A DNA stretch of 64,000 bases from Pavona decussata (lineage: Eukaryota), in the NCBI GenBank assembly GCA_977016875.1, contig CDRNST010000047.1, positions 1,240,001-1,304,000 on the forward strand. Direction: 5' to 3'. The notes under the pieces were generated by a model that was not told the origin of the DNA, made no database searches, and worked only from the letters and a program-made list of their open reading frames with translations. Made by a program: the position numbers and the translations under genes. This document shows positions 14,728-64,000 of the stretch, piece after piece. Numbering within the stretch: position 1 is the stretch's first letter; the number at the start of each line of letters is the position of its first letter.

Positions 14728-14827
14728 ATGAGTTCGCCAAGGGATTCACCTGAGTTGCCTGCCTACGACATCAACAACAACCAGCCGAGCAAGGAGTTGT
14801 CCGAAAAGTGCACGGACTCCGTCCAAG
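14728..14827 (+). CDS. Pitx: Pitx coding exon 1 (MSSPRDSPELPAYDINNNQPSKELSEKCTDSVQ)
   Basis: ATG in AAGATGA context and a strong donor CAAG|GTAAGG. Phase 1 matches the acceptor at 15131. Confidence 0.75.
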
Positions 14828-15131
14828 GTAAGGTTTTCCTCTCGGGAAAGAAGAAACGAAGATTACTTTCCAGGATTCTAGATAACTAAGTTCTAATTAG
14901 TTCAGGATTTCTCAGGGATTAAGTGTTAATCTTGCCTGAAACAACAATATGTGTTCTTACTTCTCACAATTGAACGTGCGAATGTGCCATACTCCGTGAA
15001 ATGAGCACTGTTGGGGCCGTCCAGGAAGAAGGAGCCGCGCGTTCCTTCGTGCAGACTGTACTTAAGTTGCTCTTACTCCTGTCGGAAGGTACTTATCATT
15101 CGATAAACGCTGTTTACGTTTTGTCCAACAG

Positions 15132-15313
15132 AAACAACGTCCGTGGATGGAGACGGCGCGAAACCGAAACGAAAGCAGCGAAGACAGCGGACACACTTCA
15201 CGTCCTATCAGCTGCAGGAGATGGAAGCAATGTTCGCCAGAAACCGATATCCCGACATGGCGGTTAGAGAAGATATTGCGCTGTGGACAAGTTTGACAGA
15301 AGCGCGAGTGAGG
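15132..15313 (+). CDS. Pitx: Pitx coding exon 2 (homeodomain, N-terminal part)
   Basis: ccaacag| acceptor; encodes [49 protein letters not shown], close to the Pitx consensus [44 protein letters not shown]; donor AGG|GTATGT. Confidence 0.95.
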
Positions 15314-16744
15314 GTATGTAGACAAACACTCAGTTCAGATCCTGGACCTACATGCTCGCGAGGCGAAGTCCCAGCAGTTAGATTGATGTTAAATAATTCA
15401 AATACAACTAAGTTATCAAACGCTTGGTTTGCGCGCGATGCGTAACAACTTCAGCCAGAAATTCGCTGCCACACTGTGTCCCTATCTGCGCGAAGAAATC
15501 GCGTTTTATTGTCGCTAAGCTTACAAGAGACATGCCATGTTTGTTTGCATTAAAACAAGCGCCACTTAAGTCTTGCATTTTGAATACGGAATGAAAAAAG
15601 GCGAGCAGACTGCCTGTACTCGACGCGTAAATTATTTACCACACCACAGAATACCCTGGAACAAATTCAAACTAATGGTACCGCCTAGATTGAACCCTTA
15701 GTAATGGTTTGCGCTCGATTTCTAAGACTCCAAAATGTTCCGATCGCGGGGTGAAAATAGCAAATTAGGATTAGAATCACTTTAAGGACTCGAATATCGT
15801 CAAGATGTTTGCTTTTTTAATGCATTTCTTCAAGCTGTATTTCCGTGCAATTACATTGTTTACCGCAGGATTCGCCAAACCGTTTCAAAAGCACCTGGCA
15901 GTCAACAAACCTGCCCACCCTCGCTTCTTCGCCCATTTAATTTTGAAGAGTGAAGGCTGTAGTAAAAGAAGTTAACATCTCGTGCTTAGATTTCTCGTCT
16001 TTTAAGCCTTTTTTGTCCCGTTAAGTCTTCTGTACCACCTAGATGATAGAACTGGAAGGCTTTCGGTGTTAACACCTTTGCAAATACCTGAATACCAACT
16101 GTACCTGTATTGTTGCGATTAGTAAAGACAGGTGAATTTTAGTCTCGAATCGACATGAAAATCGAGAAAGGATTGAGTTAAATATACGGTTCTTTAGGCG
16201 ACGGCGAGAATACATCGATACAGAAATTTCCTGGAACATCCGGTGGTTTCGAAATTGCAATGGCTGTATACTTTTCTTTGACAACGTCTTCTCTTTGTGA
16301 AAGAAGCCTAATTACAAACTGAAACGTGTGAAAAAAACTTGTTCGGGCTTATTTCACTTTTCACACTTCACTTGGAAGGATAAAAGCATGAGCTTAACTG
16401 GGCTTTCTTACAACGGCAGTTTGTCGACATTTTCGTCTGGTTTCATGATTTTCGTTTAATGTCTAGCACTTATTTGTGTATCAAGTCGCGAGAGCGCCCT
16501 GCCGGTTTTCAGCGCAAAGAGAAGCCCGACTTTTAAGTAGACTATTAAATAAATGTCAAACTTTTGTGTTTGTATCTCATTTTATTAATGTTGAGATTCA
16601 CAAAACACGACTGCAATTTATCATGTCATTATATTAAATTGCGCATCACCTTTCCAGAGCTAATATGCCTGTACATTAATGTACGCGTAAAGAAAAGAAA
16701 CAAACAAATATTCAATAGCGTTGACAAATATATATTCCCTTTAG

Positions 16745-17293
16745 GTGTGGTTCAAAAATCGCCGGGCGAAATGGCGAAAGAAGGAGAAGAACAACCCAAC
16801 CAACATACTTGGACAAGACAAGGGAGGAACAATTATTCCAAGCGTGAATGGATTTTACGAAAGCCCAAGCTCCATTCGCTATGAAAGCTCCGAGACACCG
16901 CCGTCGGTTTATCCCAACTACAGCACAAACTACTGGAGTAAAGGAGCTCCCAGCCTAGGCTACAGCTCACTACAGCAAGGAAGTAACAGTCTTGGGTATA
17001 ACTCGTTCAGCCAAATACCTCCACCGTGCCCTGTGCCACCGCAAATATCAGGAACTCTGAGTCCCTTTTCAACCCCAATCTCGAGCGATAACAGCTCGGT
17101 ATCATACCCGGCCAGTTCTTCCAGCGTTCCGAGTGTTCCTTGCGGTTATCCGCCAACTTATGGCTACCAAGAACAGAGCTCGGTGTATTTAAAAGGTAAA
17201 AGTTCTTCCATGAGTCACCATCCGAACTATTCGCAGCCGAATCCGTACAGCTCATATCCATACGGGATGGCCGAAATCCCAATTAATATTTAG
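16745..17293 (+). CDS. Pitx: Pitx coding exon 3 (helix 3 VWFKNRRAKWRKKE, K50, plus S/P/Y-rich C-terminus)
   Basis: ccctttag|GTG TGG TTC AAA AAT; open to TAG at 17291-17293. Confidence 0.95.
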   Translation: MWFKNRRAKWRKKEKNNPTNILGQDKGGTIIPSVNGFYESPSSIRYESSETPPSVYPNYSTNYWSKGAPSLGYSSLQQGSNSLGYNSFSQIPPPCPVPPQISGTLSPFSTPISSDNSSVSYPASSSSVPSVPCGYPPTYGYQEQSSVYLKGKSSSMSHHPNYSQPNPYSSYPYGMAEIPINI

Positions 17294-63179: not shown

Positions 63180-63385
63180 TTTATATAAGTGTCACTGTTT
63201 TTAACTCTACAGTACCAATTTGGGCCGATACTGTAATTGATTAAAGGAAACACTACAAGCTCAAAGCAATTCTGTAAAAATCCCAACTGACAGGAGGGCT
63301 CACCAGATGACTATTTACATTTAGCATAGCGGAGGATTTGAACAAGGGACTACCTCGCGGTCTTGAACCCGAGAACTGCAAATCT
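63180..63385 (-). mobile_element. Degenerate SINE fragment
   Basis: AATCCCAACTG.CAGGAGG...CCAG.TG.CTATTTACA...GAGGATTTGAAC..GGGACTACC...CTTGAACCCG, which is B-box-like on the minus strand. Confidence 0.5.
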
Positions 63386-63710
63386 ACTACTGCAAATCTG
63401 TATAACACCTATATATGTTTCGGATTAACTTGTGATGGAAGTGAGGTATACGAAAGTAATTTATATGATTTGATTTGATTAACTTGTGCAGTCATTATGG
63501 CATTAACTCAATAAAGGAAATTATATGTCCTTTTTTTCCATGTCATGAAACGAGAAACCATGTTCAATTTTTTTCCAGAGAAAACCATACAAGGTTCTGA
63601 TTTCAATATAAAGATTGAAAAACTGCGCAGCGTAGTTAATTAATGAGAATTTAAAGATTATAAAATCGACGCTGTTAATTTAACGAACTTTTCTTACGGT
63701 ACAGTTTCGT

Positions 63711-63744
63711 ACCCTGAAGAAGGCAGCATTGCCGAAACGTCGGT
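63711..63744 (+). ncRNA. Minimal type-I hammerhead-ribozyme-like motif (Penelope type)
   Basis: ACC-CUGAAGA-A-GGCA(GCAU)UGCC-GAAAC-GUC-GGU: intact core, 4-bp stem II, 3-bp stem I. Confidence 0.5.
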
Positions 63745-63843
63745 TTTGATTGCGTCGAGTTTTAATTAGCGATTGTTGTTTTATCCTCTTGTGATTAGCT
63801 AAACCTTTAAGGCACCTTTACTAATACATACCTACATTTTCAG

Positions 63844-64000
63844 ATGTTATCCTGGAAGCTCGGCAAGAGAAAAATCGCCGTCCCCCAAGGCGCACGCGCA
63901 CAGCCTTCACGCACCAACAGCTAGGAATACTGGAAAAATCCTTCAGCAAAACGCATTACCCGGATGTGGAGCTTAGAGAGCAGATTGCTGCAAAGACCAA
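63844..64000 (+). CDS. Dmbx: Dmbx-C exon 2 (homeodomain), truncated by the window end
   Basis: cattttcag|AT GTT ATC CTG GAA GCT; encodes [52 protein letters not shown]. Confidence 0.92.

Follow-up and report, generated by a model that had tools for sequence, protein, structure and literature searches.

Introduction

Conserved homeobox clusters, i.e., Hox, ParaHox, NK, homeobrain-rx-orthopedia (HRO), SINE, and Irx, are the main evidence that the developmental toolkit of animals was enlarged through tandem duplication, as well as for regulatory constraint acting over long distances. Here we describe a stretch of 64,000 nucleotides from the stony coral Pavona decussata (GCA_977016875.1, contig CDRNST010000047.1, positions 1,240,001–1,304,000, forward strand; hereafter the window, on contig C47), which carries the head-patterning gene Pitx, followed on the same strand by the first members of an array of Dmbx genes. 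Both are PRD-class homeobox families with lysine at homeodomain position 50 (Lys50 or K50). The HRO cluster is likewise a small PRD-class cluster, conserved between Cnidaria and a protostome lineage (Mazza et al., 2010; PMC2938728). It differs in comprising other (Q50) families with one gene per family, and its conservation across phyla has been shown directly, whereas that of Pitx and Dmbx depends on the hexacoral data presented here and one paper on arachnids.

The arachnid paper (Genome Biol Evol 2025; PMC12717030) reports that Dmbx lies between spz3 and Pitx in a harvestman, within 0.09 Mb, and that every arachnid surveyed shows linkage of Pitx, Drgx, and Dmbx; its authors infer such linkage for the arachnid ancestor. 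Pitx and Dmbx are also near neighbors in the coral, within 21 kb. However, arachnids have a single Dmbx gene rather than an array of eight, Pitx is inverted in spiders, and the arachnid group includes Drgx, which was not found in the coral block. The arachnid paper makes no comparison with cnidarians.

Tandem duplicates of Dmbx are known from anthozoans, as stated in the original prediction that was made from the window sequence. For Nematostella, six (PMC1779571) or seven (PMC7642931) DMBX homeodomains have been described, and Acropora millepora has Dmbx duplicates in tight linkage (Hislop et al., 2005, as cited in PMC6214176). One Nematostella Dmbx gene is located near the Hox cluster (PMC1779807). 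The coral locus resembles these systems in having several tightly linked Dmbx paralogues, but the duplications are called independent in the text of PMC6214176, and neither Pitx nor Pax is named as flanking an array in the passages of these papers that were consulted. Thus, tandem Dmbx arrays in anthozoans and Pitx-Dmbx linkage in arachnids are already published; we found no report in the literature of Pitx-Dmbx linkage in any cnidarian.

Our analysis indicates, with a probability of about 0.8, that the window is the 5' end of a conserved hexacorallian block that consists of Pitx, a head-to-tail Dmbx array, and Pax, and that has grown by tandem duplication.

Results

Extent and Gene Content of the Block

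We analyzed the window together with the next 140 kb downstream, for which positions are given as a continuation of the window numbering. A whole-genome search with the Pfam Homeodomain family showed that the interval from 1.255 to 1.408 Mb of C47 contains ten split homeoboxes, each of them on the + strand, and a search with a Dmbx-B exon reproduced this picture of the array. Their order is Pitx, eight Dmbx genes (A to H), and a Pax gene, amounting to ten PRD-class genes in about 155 kb, among which no further genes were detected by open reading frame (ORF) and Pfam analysis. The predicted four spliced genes on one strand, Pitx followed by Dmbx-A, -B, and -C, were borne out by motif scans and splice models. 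The prediction of three tandem Dmbx genes is correct for the window, but the array itself is longer: extending the scaffold downstream, a check that had been proposed, revealed five more Dmbx genes (D to H) before Pax.

A six-frame motif scan of the window located the helix-3 motif WFKNRRAK, with Lys50, at 16748, 44209, and 54910, and N-terminal homeodomain halves at about 15.2, 42.0, 54.6, and 63.9 kb, all on the + strand. The helix 3 of Dmbx-C had been expected beyond the window; it is found 793 bp beyond the end of the window and likewise has K50. In all four genes, a GT..AG intron splits the homeobox after position 46 (46/47), the classic position of the PRD class.

The Pitx model (14728–17293, + strand) has three exons that join in frame at GT..AG splice sites and encode 276 amino acids. 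Exon 1 (14728–14827) starts with ATG and ends in phase 1 before GTAAGG, and the encoded N-terminus (MSSPRDSPEL...) can be aligned with that of Acropora Pitx (P0005). Exon 2 (15132–15313) encodes homeodomain positions 1–46 (Pfam Homeodomain, 4e-14). Exon 3 (16745–17293) opens with the K50 helix 3, VWFKNRRAKWRK (16745–16780), and continues to the C-terminus and stop codon. Acropora and Porites Pitx have exactly the same homeodomain over its full length, and the exon 3 product is 82–87% identical to coral Pitx proteins and 52% identical to the Nematostella protein named 'pituitary homeobox 2'. The closest protein match to Pitx is 87% identical, followed by a cluster of Orbicella, Desmophyllum, and Oculina Pitx proteins (86%), Acropora (82%), and Porites (76%). 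An OAR domain was not recovered from exon 3, for which no Pfam family was reported at E ≤ 0.01; a weak stretch in the C-terminus (...SSVYLKGKSSS...) is kept in other cnidarian Pitx proteins.

All eight Dmbx genes share one plan. The first exon contains an eh1-like FSI(E/D)NIL motif and ends in ...LAxxLA, the second starts with D(I/V)IL(E/K) and encodes homeodomain positions 1–46, and the third opens with the K50 helix 3. The models of A, B, and C encode 230, 215, and 218 amino acids, respectively, from three exons each, all in frame, on the + strand, and with GT..AG introns. In Dmbx-A, exon 1 (37971–38085) encodes MDRHPFSIENIL... with the eh1-like motif and ends in ...LAERMA/G, exon 2 (41998–42173) has the DIILK motif and homeodomain positions 1–46 (Pfam Homeodomain, 7.6e-12), and exon 3 (44206–44607) encodes VWFKNRRAKYRK, with Lys50, then the C-terminus and stop. 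Exon 1 of Dmbx-B (49581–49710) encodes MEANPFSIESIL... and ends in ...LAVKLA/G; a DVILE motif and homeodomain positions 1–46 (Pfam Homeodomain, 3.1e-14) follow in exon 2 (54519–54697), and the K50 helix 3, C-terminus, and stop in exon 3 (54907–55245). Dmbx-C begins with an exon encoding MDTNPFSIESIL... (59870–60002); its exon 2, with homeodomain positions 1–46, starts at 63844 and runs across the window end at 64000 to 64022, and exon 3, with the K50 helix 3, lies at 64790–65134.

The exon model of Dmbx-B was confirmed by spliced contigs from two presumed RNA runs of the same organism (X5 and X19), which are RNA by a tool's guess. Contigs of both runs contain the joint between exons 1 and 2 (49709/10 to 54518/19, across a 4.8-kb GT..AG intron), and overhangs at 54699 and 54905 fit the joint between exons 2 and 3. 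The spliced contigs join 49710 directly to 54519; it is the upstream exon 1 that these transcripts use. RNA or RNA-like run contigs were also observed inside intron 1 of Dmbx-B (51805–52432 and 53116–53429), some of them with several mismatches. Parts of the window also occur in runs labelled 'coral metagenome'.

Within the array, exon 2 of Dmbx-B and that of Dmbx-C are 96% identical in nucleotide sequence over 163 nt (54513–54675 compared to 63838–64000). By eye, the proteins of exons 1 and 3 are roughly 65% and 50% identical, respectively, and no other repeats of at least 150 nt were found between the B and C units. This pattern resembles gene conversion restricted to exon 2. B and C would be either the youngest pair of the array or a pair homogenized by gene conversion.

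The remaining Dmbx genes, all on the + strand with the three-exon plan and K50, are located at 89.9–92.4 kb (D), 100.5–105.2 kb (E), 107.1–111.4 kb (F), 116.2–120.5 kb (G), and about 140.1–141.5 kb (H). The Pax gene closes the block at C47:1,406,354–1,409,377 (166.4–169.4 kb, + strand) and encodes a Ser50 homeodomain in addition to a paired box that is complete (Pfam PAX, 2e-66). PAX5 (218.7 bits) and PAX8 (218.4 bits) match the paired domain of this PaxB or PaxC candidate with slightly higher scores than PAX6 does (208.5 bits).

Homeobox-dense regions were also found on other contigs of the same genome, i.e., C8 (3.69–3.97 Mb), C28 (1.46–1.62 Mb), C67 (2.64–2.81 Mb), C180 (2.12–2.52 Mb), C148, and C46 (6.25–6.37 Mb). 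C8 carries more than 20 unsplit homeoboxes in 280 kb, and C67 carries nine split PRD-class homeoboxes, of which the five that were readable have Pax3/7-like domains, with Ser50 confirmed in three. On C28 there are at least six tandem Otx genes. Like the Dmbx array, this cnidarian Otx array consists of tandem-multiplied K50 PRD-class genes with the 46/47 homeobox intron; in contrast, its contig is not that of Dmbx, its genes form a clade of their own (support 100/98), and the LAERLA-DIILE motif described below is missing. With so many dense arrays in the genome, tandem amplification of homeobox genes is general here and not peculiar to Dmbx.

Family Assignment

We constructed a maximum likelihood tree of 52 homeodomains (60 columns), for which the translations of the two homeodomain exons, otherwise searched separately, were joined (46 + 14 residues). 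The tree includes 20 of about 38 other split-homeobox loci of the genome, and with those 20 placed, Gsc was not located in this genome. The first gene of the block falls inside the Pitx clade (100/98). Genes A to H group with cnidarian Dmbx (96/99) and, together with these, with Dmbx of a frog, a salmon, a crinoid, an annelid, and a bivalve (92/90), with A, E, F, and H on long branches. A grouping of Otx, Pitx, and Dmbx is weak (86/77).

Motifs and intron positions agree with the tree. Gene G is the canonical Dmbx, and its coral orthologues are named diencephalon/mesencephalon homeobox. One of these orthologues (P0024) is 76% identical to vertebrate DMBX1 over the motif and homeodomain, and among the 120 matches listed, the family-named bilaterian hits to this region are all DMBX1. 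The sequence ALTLAERLADIILE(A)RYG directly precedes the homeodomain in frog, crinoid, annelid, bivalve, anemone, and coral proteins. Both DMBX1 of bilaterians and Dmbx of anemones contain the longer motif ALTLAERLA-DIILEARYG. In the coral array it reads ALTLAERLA/DIILEVHYG in D and G, ALALAERMA/DIILK in A, and ALSLAVKLA/DVILEA in B and C; the versions of A, B, and C appear derived but recognizable. Moreover, the two introns of the coral genes, one before DIILE and one at homeodomain position 46/47, recur at these sites in the Dmbx gene of a crinoid. These sequence comparisons place all eight array genes in the Dmbx family, as the phylogenetic check suggested in the original prediction had anticipated for the window genes, and its K50 PRD-class identities for Pitx and Dmbx were likewise right.

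An OAR-like C-terminal motif was matched by regular expression in G (…PTSSSVDLWRLQ) and its coral orthologues. The pattern found none in Dmbx-A, -B, or -C, and likewise missed the bilaterian references; no Pfam OAR domain was found in exon 3 of Dmbx-A. A classification based on PDB was dropped: PDB holds no DMBX1 entry, and the best PDB matches to the Dmbx homeobox exon were DUX4, ALX4, and PITX2.

Linkage in Other Cnidarians

Linkage of Pitx and Dmbx recurs within the phylum, closely in the stony coral Oculina patagonica and the sea anemone Actinostola, and loosely, at 2 Mb, in Nematostella. In Oculina (robust clade; CM126639.1), Pitx (10,978,274–10,980,877, − strand) and the orthologue of G (10,874,720–10,877,841, − strand) are about 101 kb apart, with the order and relative strand seen in Pavona, where the two genes lie at 15 kb and 116 kb. 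Their locus tags, G018627 and G018618, are nine apart. The Oculina orthologue of F is 5 kb upstream of G, such that F and G stand side by side in the same order in both corals. In Actinostola (JAUJYZ010000680.1), Pitx (232–235 kb, − strand) and the orthologue of D (293–296 kb, + strand) are 58 kb apart on opposite strands. The Nematostella orthologue of D is followed 5 kb downstream by a second K50 gene (IWFKNRRAK...), resembling the succession of D and E in Pavona.

Sea anemones have near-identical orthologues of D, and the sequence data show an old age for D, F, and G at the least. Because D-type orthologues occur in anemones and F and G orthologues in Oculina, much of the array is shared and old, in contrast to the published description of anthozoan duplications as independent. 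Since the block is shared by hexacorals, it is at least as old as the split between stony corals and sea anemones, and has been loosened in some anemones.

These comparisons also bear on whether the juxtaposition of Pitx and Dmbx could be an assembly misjoin or a rearrangement private to this species, either of which the original prediction had named as grounds for abandoning it. Either might be suspected from the length of the Pitx to Dmbx-A spacer (20.7 kb) and from the retroelement remnant within it. However, the single run of N in the window is at 6679–6823, with none from 6.8 kb to the window end; tblastx showed collinearity with Oculina on both sides; and the same neighbors are found in the independent Oculina and Actinostola assemblies. 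As the linkage is shared by independent assemblies of other hexacorals, we set both possibilities aside as highly improbable.

In an adjacent region, we observed a 500-codon open frame upstream of Pitx (971–2470, − strand) that has no Pfam match. Over about 140–155 amino acids, it is 46–48% identical to Pitx-adjacent sequence in Actinostola and Nematostella, and the Actinostola counterpart is part of an annotated Ig-domain gene beside Pitx. With similar sequence adjoining Pitx in both anemones, this neighbor of Pitx is conserved as well, although its relative orientation differs.

Spacers and Conserved Non-Coding Sequence

The genes of the block are separated by gene-poor spacers of 5–25 kb. 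We compared spacer ORFs with Pfam, using those of at least 75 amino acids between 17.3 and 37.9 kb and of at least 110 amino acids elsewhere in the window. No Pfam-matching ORF was found in these spacers besides a decayed reverse-transcriptase fragment, though genes with short exons or novel genes could escape this test. The fragment (25490–25753, + strand; RVT_1, 1.9e-5, below the Pfam cut-off) is the only Pfam-recognizable ORF in the 20.7-kb spacer between Pitx and Dmbx-A. Within the limits of the ORF and Pfam tests, the original claim that no other protein-coding gene lies between the homeobox genes holds.

Non-coding sequence around Pitx is conserved. Blocks upstream of the gene (12846–13193, 13802–14145, and 14350–14679, and a further block at 10247–10447) matched the Pitx loci of Oculina and Acropora by tblastx, whichever frame or strand was used. 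Others occupy Pitx intron 2 (15437–16140, up to 94% identity to Oculina) and the region downstream of the gene (17830–18415). Matches at 13950–14106, 14395–14481, 14888–14971, and 15804–15878 extend as far as Nematostella, with up to 92% identity over 25 codon-equivalents. By tblastx, the conserved blocks that surround Pitx and those that precede Dmbx-G are collinear with Oculina. The short blocks around and inside Pitx are candidates for deeply conserved cis-regulatory elements.

Homeodomains with Lys50 bind TAATCC-type sites, and the Pitx and Dmbx proteins should, by prediction, act as K50 paired-like transcription factors that bind them. TAATCC occurs 46 times compared to 31.4 ± 5.6 expected, a mild excess attained in one of 100 shuffles.

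These features raise the question, also posed by the original prediction, of whether the block is kept as a co-regulated unit, through a shared regulatory domain with K50 auto- and cross-regulation of Pitx and the Dmbx paralogues. Such a unit would be consistent with the gene-poor spacers, the nearly identical spacing from Pitx to G in the two corals, the TAATCC excess, and the retention in Oculina, and in part in Nematostella, of non-coding blocks around Pitx and upstream of Dmbx-G. However, the conserved blocks lie close to single genes and need not be shared enhancers. Moreover, Actinostola and Nematostella retain both genes even though Pitx lies on the opposite strand to Dmbx in the former and at a distance of 2 Mb in the latter. 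We consider a co-regulated unit less likely than not.

Elsewhere in the window, a tRNA gene at 4034–4106 (− strand; 40.7 bits) was the sole Rfam family at the gathering threshold; the same scan found no hammerhead ribozyme at threshold anywhere in the window.

Discussion

The evidence described above is most consistent with a conserved hexacorallian block of Pitx, Dmbx genes, and Pax. In the mechanism that we propose, the Dmbx array would have grown by tandem duplication through unequal crossing-over, beginning before stony corals and sea anemones diverged, and its uniform orientation would follow from this mode of growth. The block may have been kept together by slow rearrangement of anthozoan genomes, by long-range regulatory elements interleaved in the gene-poor spacers, or by both.

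Several observations weigh against this interpretation or limit it. In Nematostella, a distance of 1.98 Mb separates Pitx (6.74 Mb) from a D-type Dmbx pair (4.75 Mb) of the same chromosome; with this distance and another Dmbx gene by the Hox cluster, tight linkage of Pitx and Dmbx is evidently not obligatory. Indirect evidence for linkage comes from contigs of identical length that carry Pitx and Dmbx in Desmophyllum (2,350,008), Pocillopora verrucosa (22,355,786), and Montipora foliosa (49,316,441), but in these three species linkage is read from contig sizes and not from coordinates. The absence of intervening genes was judged by ORFs and Pfam, and the family tree comprises 60 columns. Regulatory constraint on the block is something we infer, and the TAATCC excess is mild.

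A deeper origin is a tentative extension, with the odds somewhat against it: the Pitx-Dmbx pair, perhaps with Pax, could be what remains of a PRD-class cluster older than the split of cnidarians and bilaterians, in which the two K50 families would have been born side by side through tandem duplication. The spz3-Dmbx-Pitx arrangement within 0.09 Mb in the harvestman (PMC12717030) and the same Pitx-Dmbx adjacency in hexacorals point in this direction, since chance is an improbable explanation for two named genes having become such near neighbors, only a few genes apart, in each of two phyla independently. The grouping of Otx, Pitx, and Dmbx in the homeodomain tree (86/77) would also fit, as would the slightly better match of the Pax paired domain to PAX5/8 than to PAX6 and the location of human PITX3 (10q24.32), PAX2 (10q24.31), and DRGX (10q11.23) on chromosome arm 10q (PMC2211742). 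On the other hand, human DMBX1 (1p34.1) is on a different chromosome than all three PITX genes (PMC2211742), Nematostella Pitx and Dmbx are 2 Mb apart, and tight linkage is seen in two lineages only, hexacorals and arachnids. There is no Pitx within 10 kb of the crinoid Dmbx gene, nor any second homeobox within ±10 kb of it, though this range is too short to be informative. Furthermore, support for the K50 grouping is weak, and part of the signal comes from residue 50 itself.

The original prediction had suggested a relic of an ancient K50 cluster, and this idea is only partly supported. That arachnids also link both genes favors an old Pitx-Dmbx pair, and with two lineages as its basis, a pre-bilaterian pair is a reasonable hypothesis. 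In contrast, a super-cluster in which Otx and Gsc would be linked to Pitx and Dmbx finds no such linkage for Otx, because the Otx array is on C28 and not on C47; there is no support for a wider K50 cluster to which Otx would belong. Slightly more doubtful than the relic in its general form is a specific version in which a hitherto unrecognized PRD-class cluster of Pitx and Dmbx, perhaps joined by a Pax2/5/8-type gene and, in bilaterians, by Drgx, descends from the cnidarian-bilaterian ancestor. It would have stayed tight in stony corals and harvestmen, become loose in spiders and Nematostella, and left PITX3, PAX2, and DRGX on human 10q.

Overall, the result is a solid annotation and a testable synteny hypothesis rather than a new kind of system. 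Because it combines old paralogues (D, F, and G) with a young or homogenized pair (B and C), the eight-gene array is a convenient non-bilaterian system for studying subfunctionalization and gene conversion. If a Pitx-Dmbx block common to hexacorals and arachnids proves true, it would be a second PRD-class cluster of pre-bilaterian age and would bear on a possible tandem origin common to the Lys50 families.

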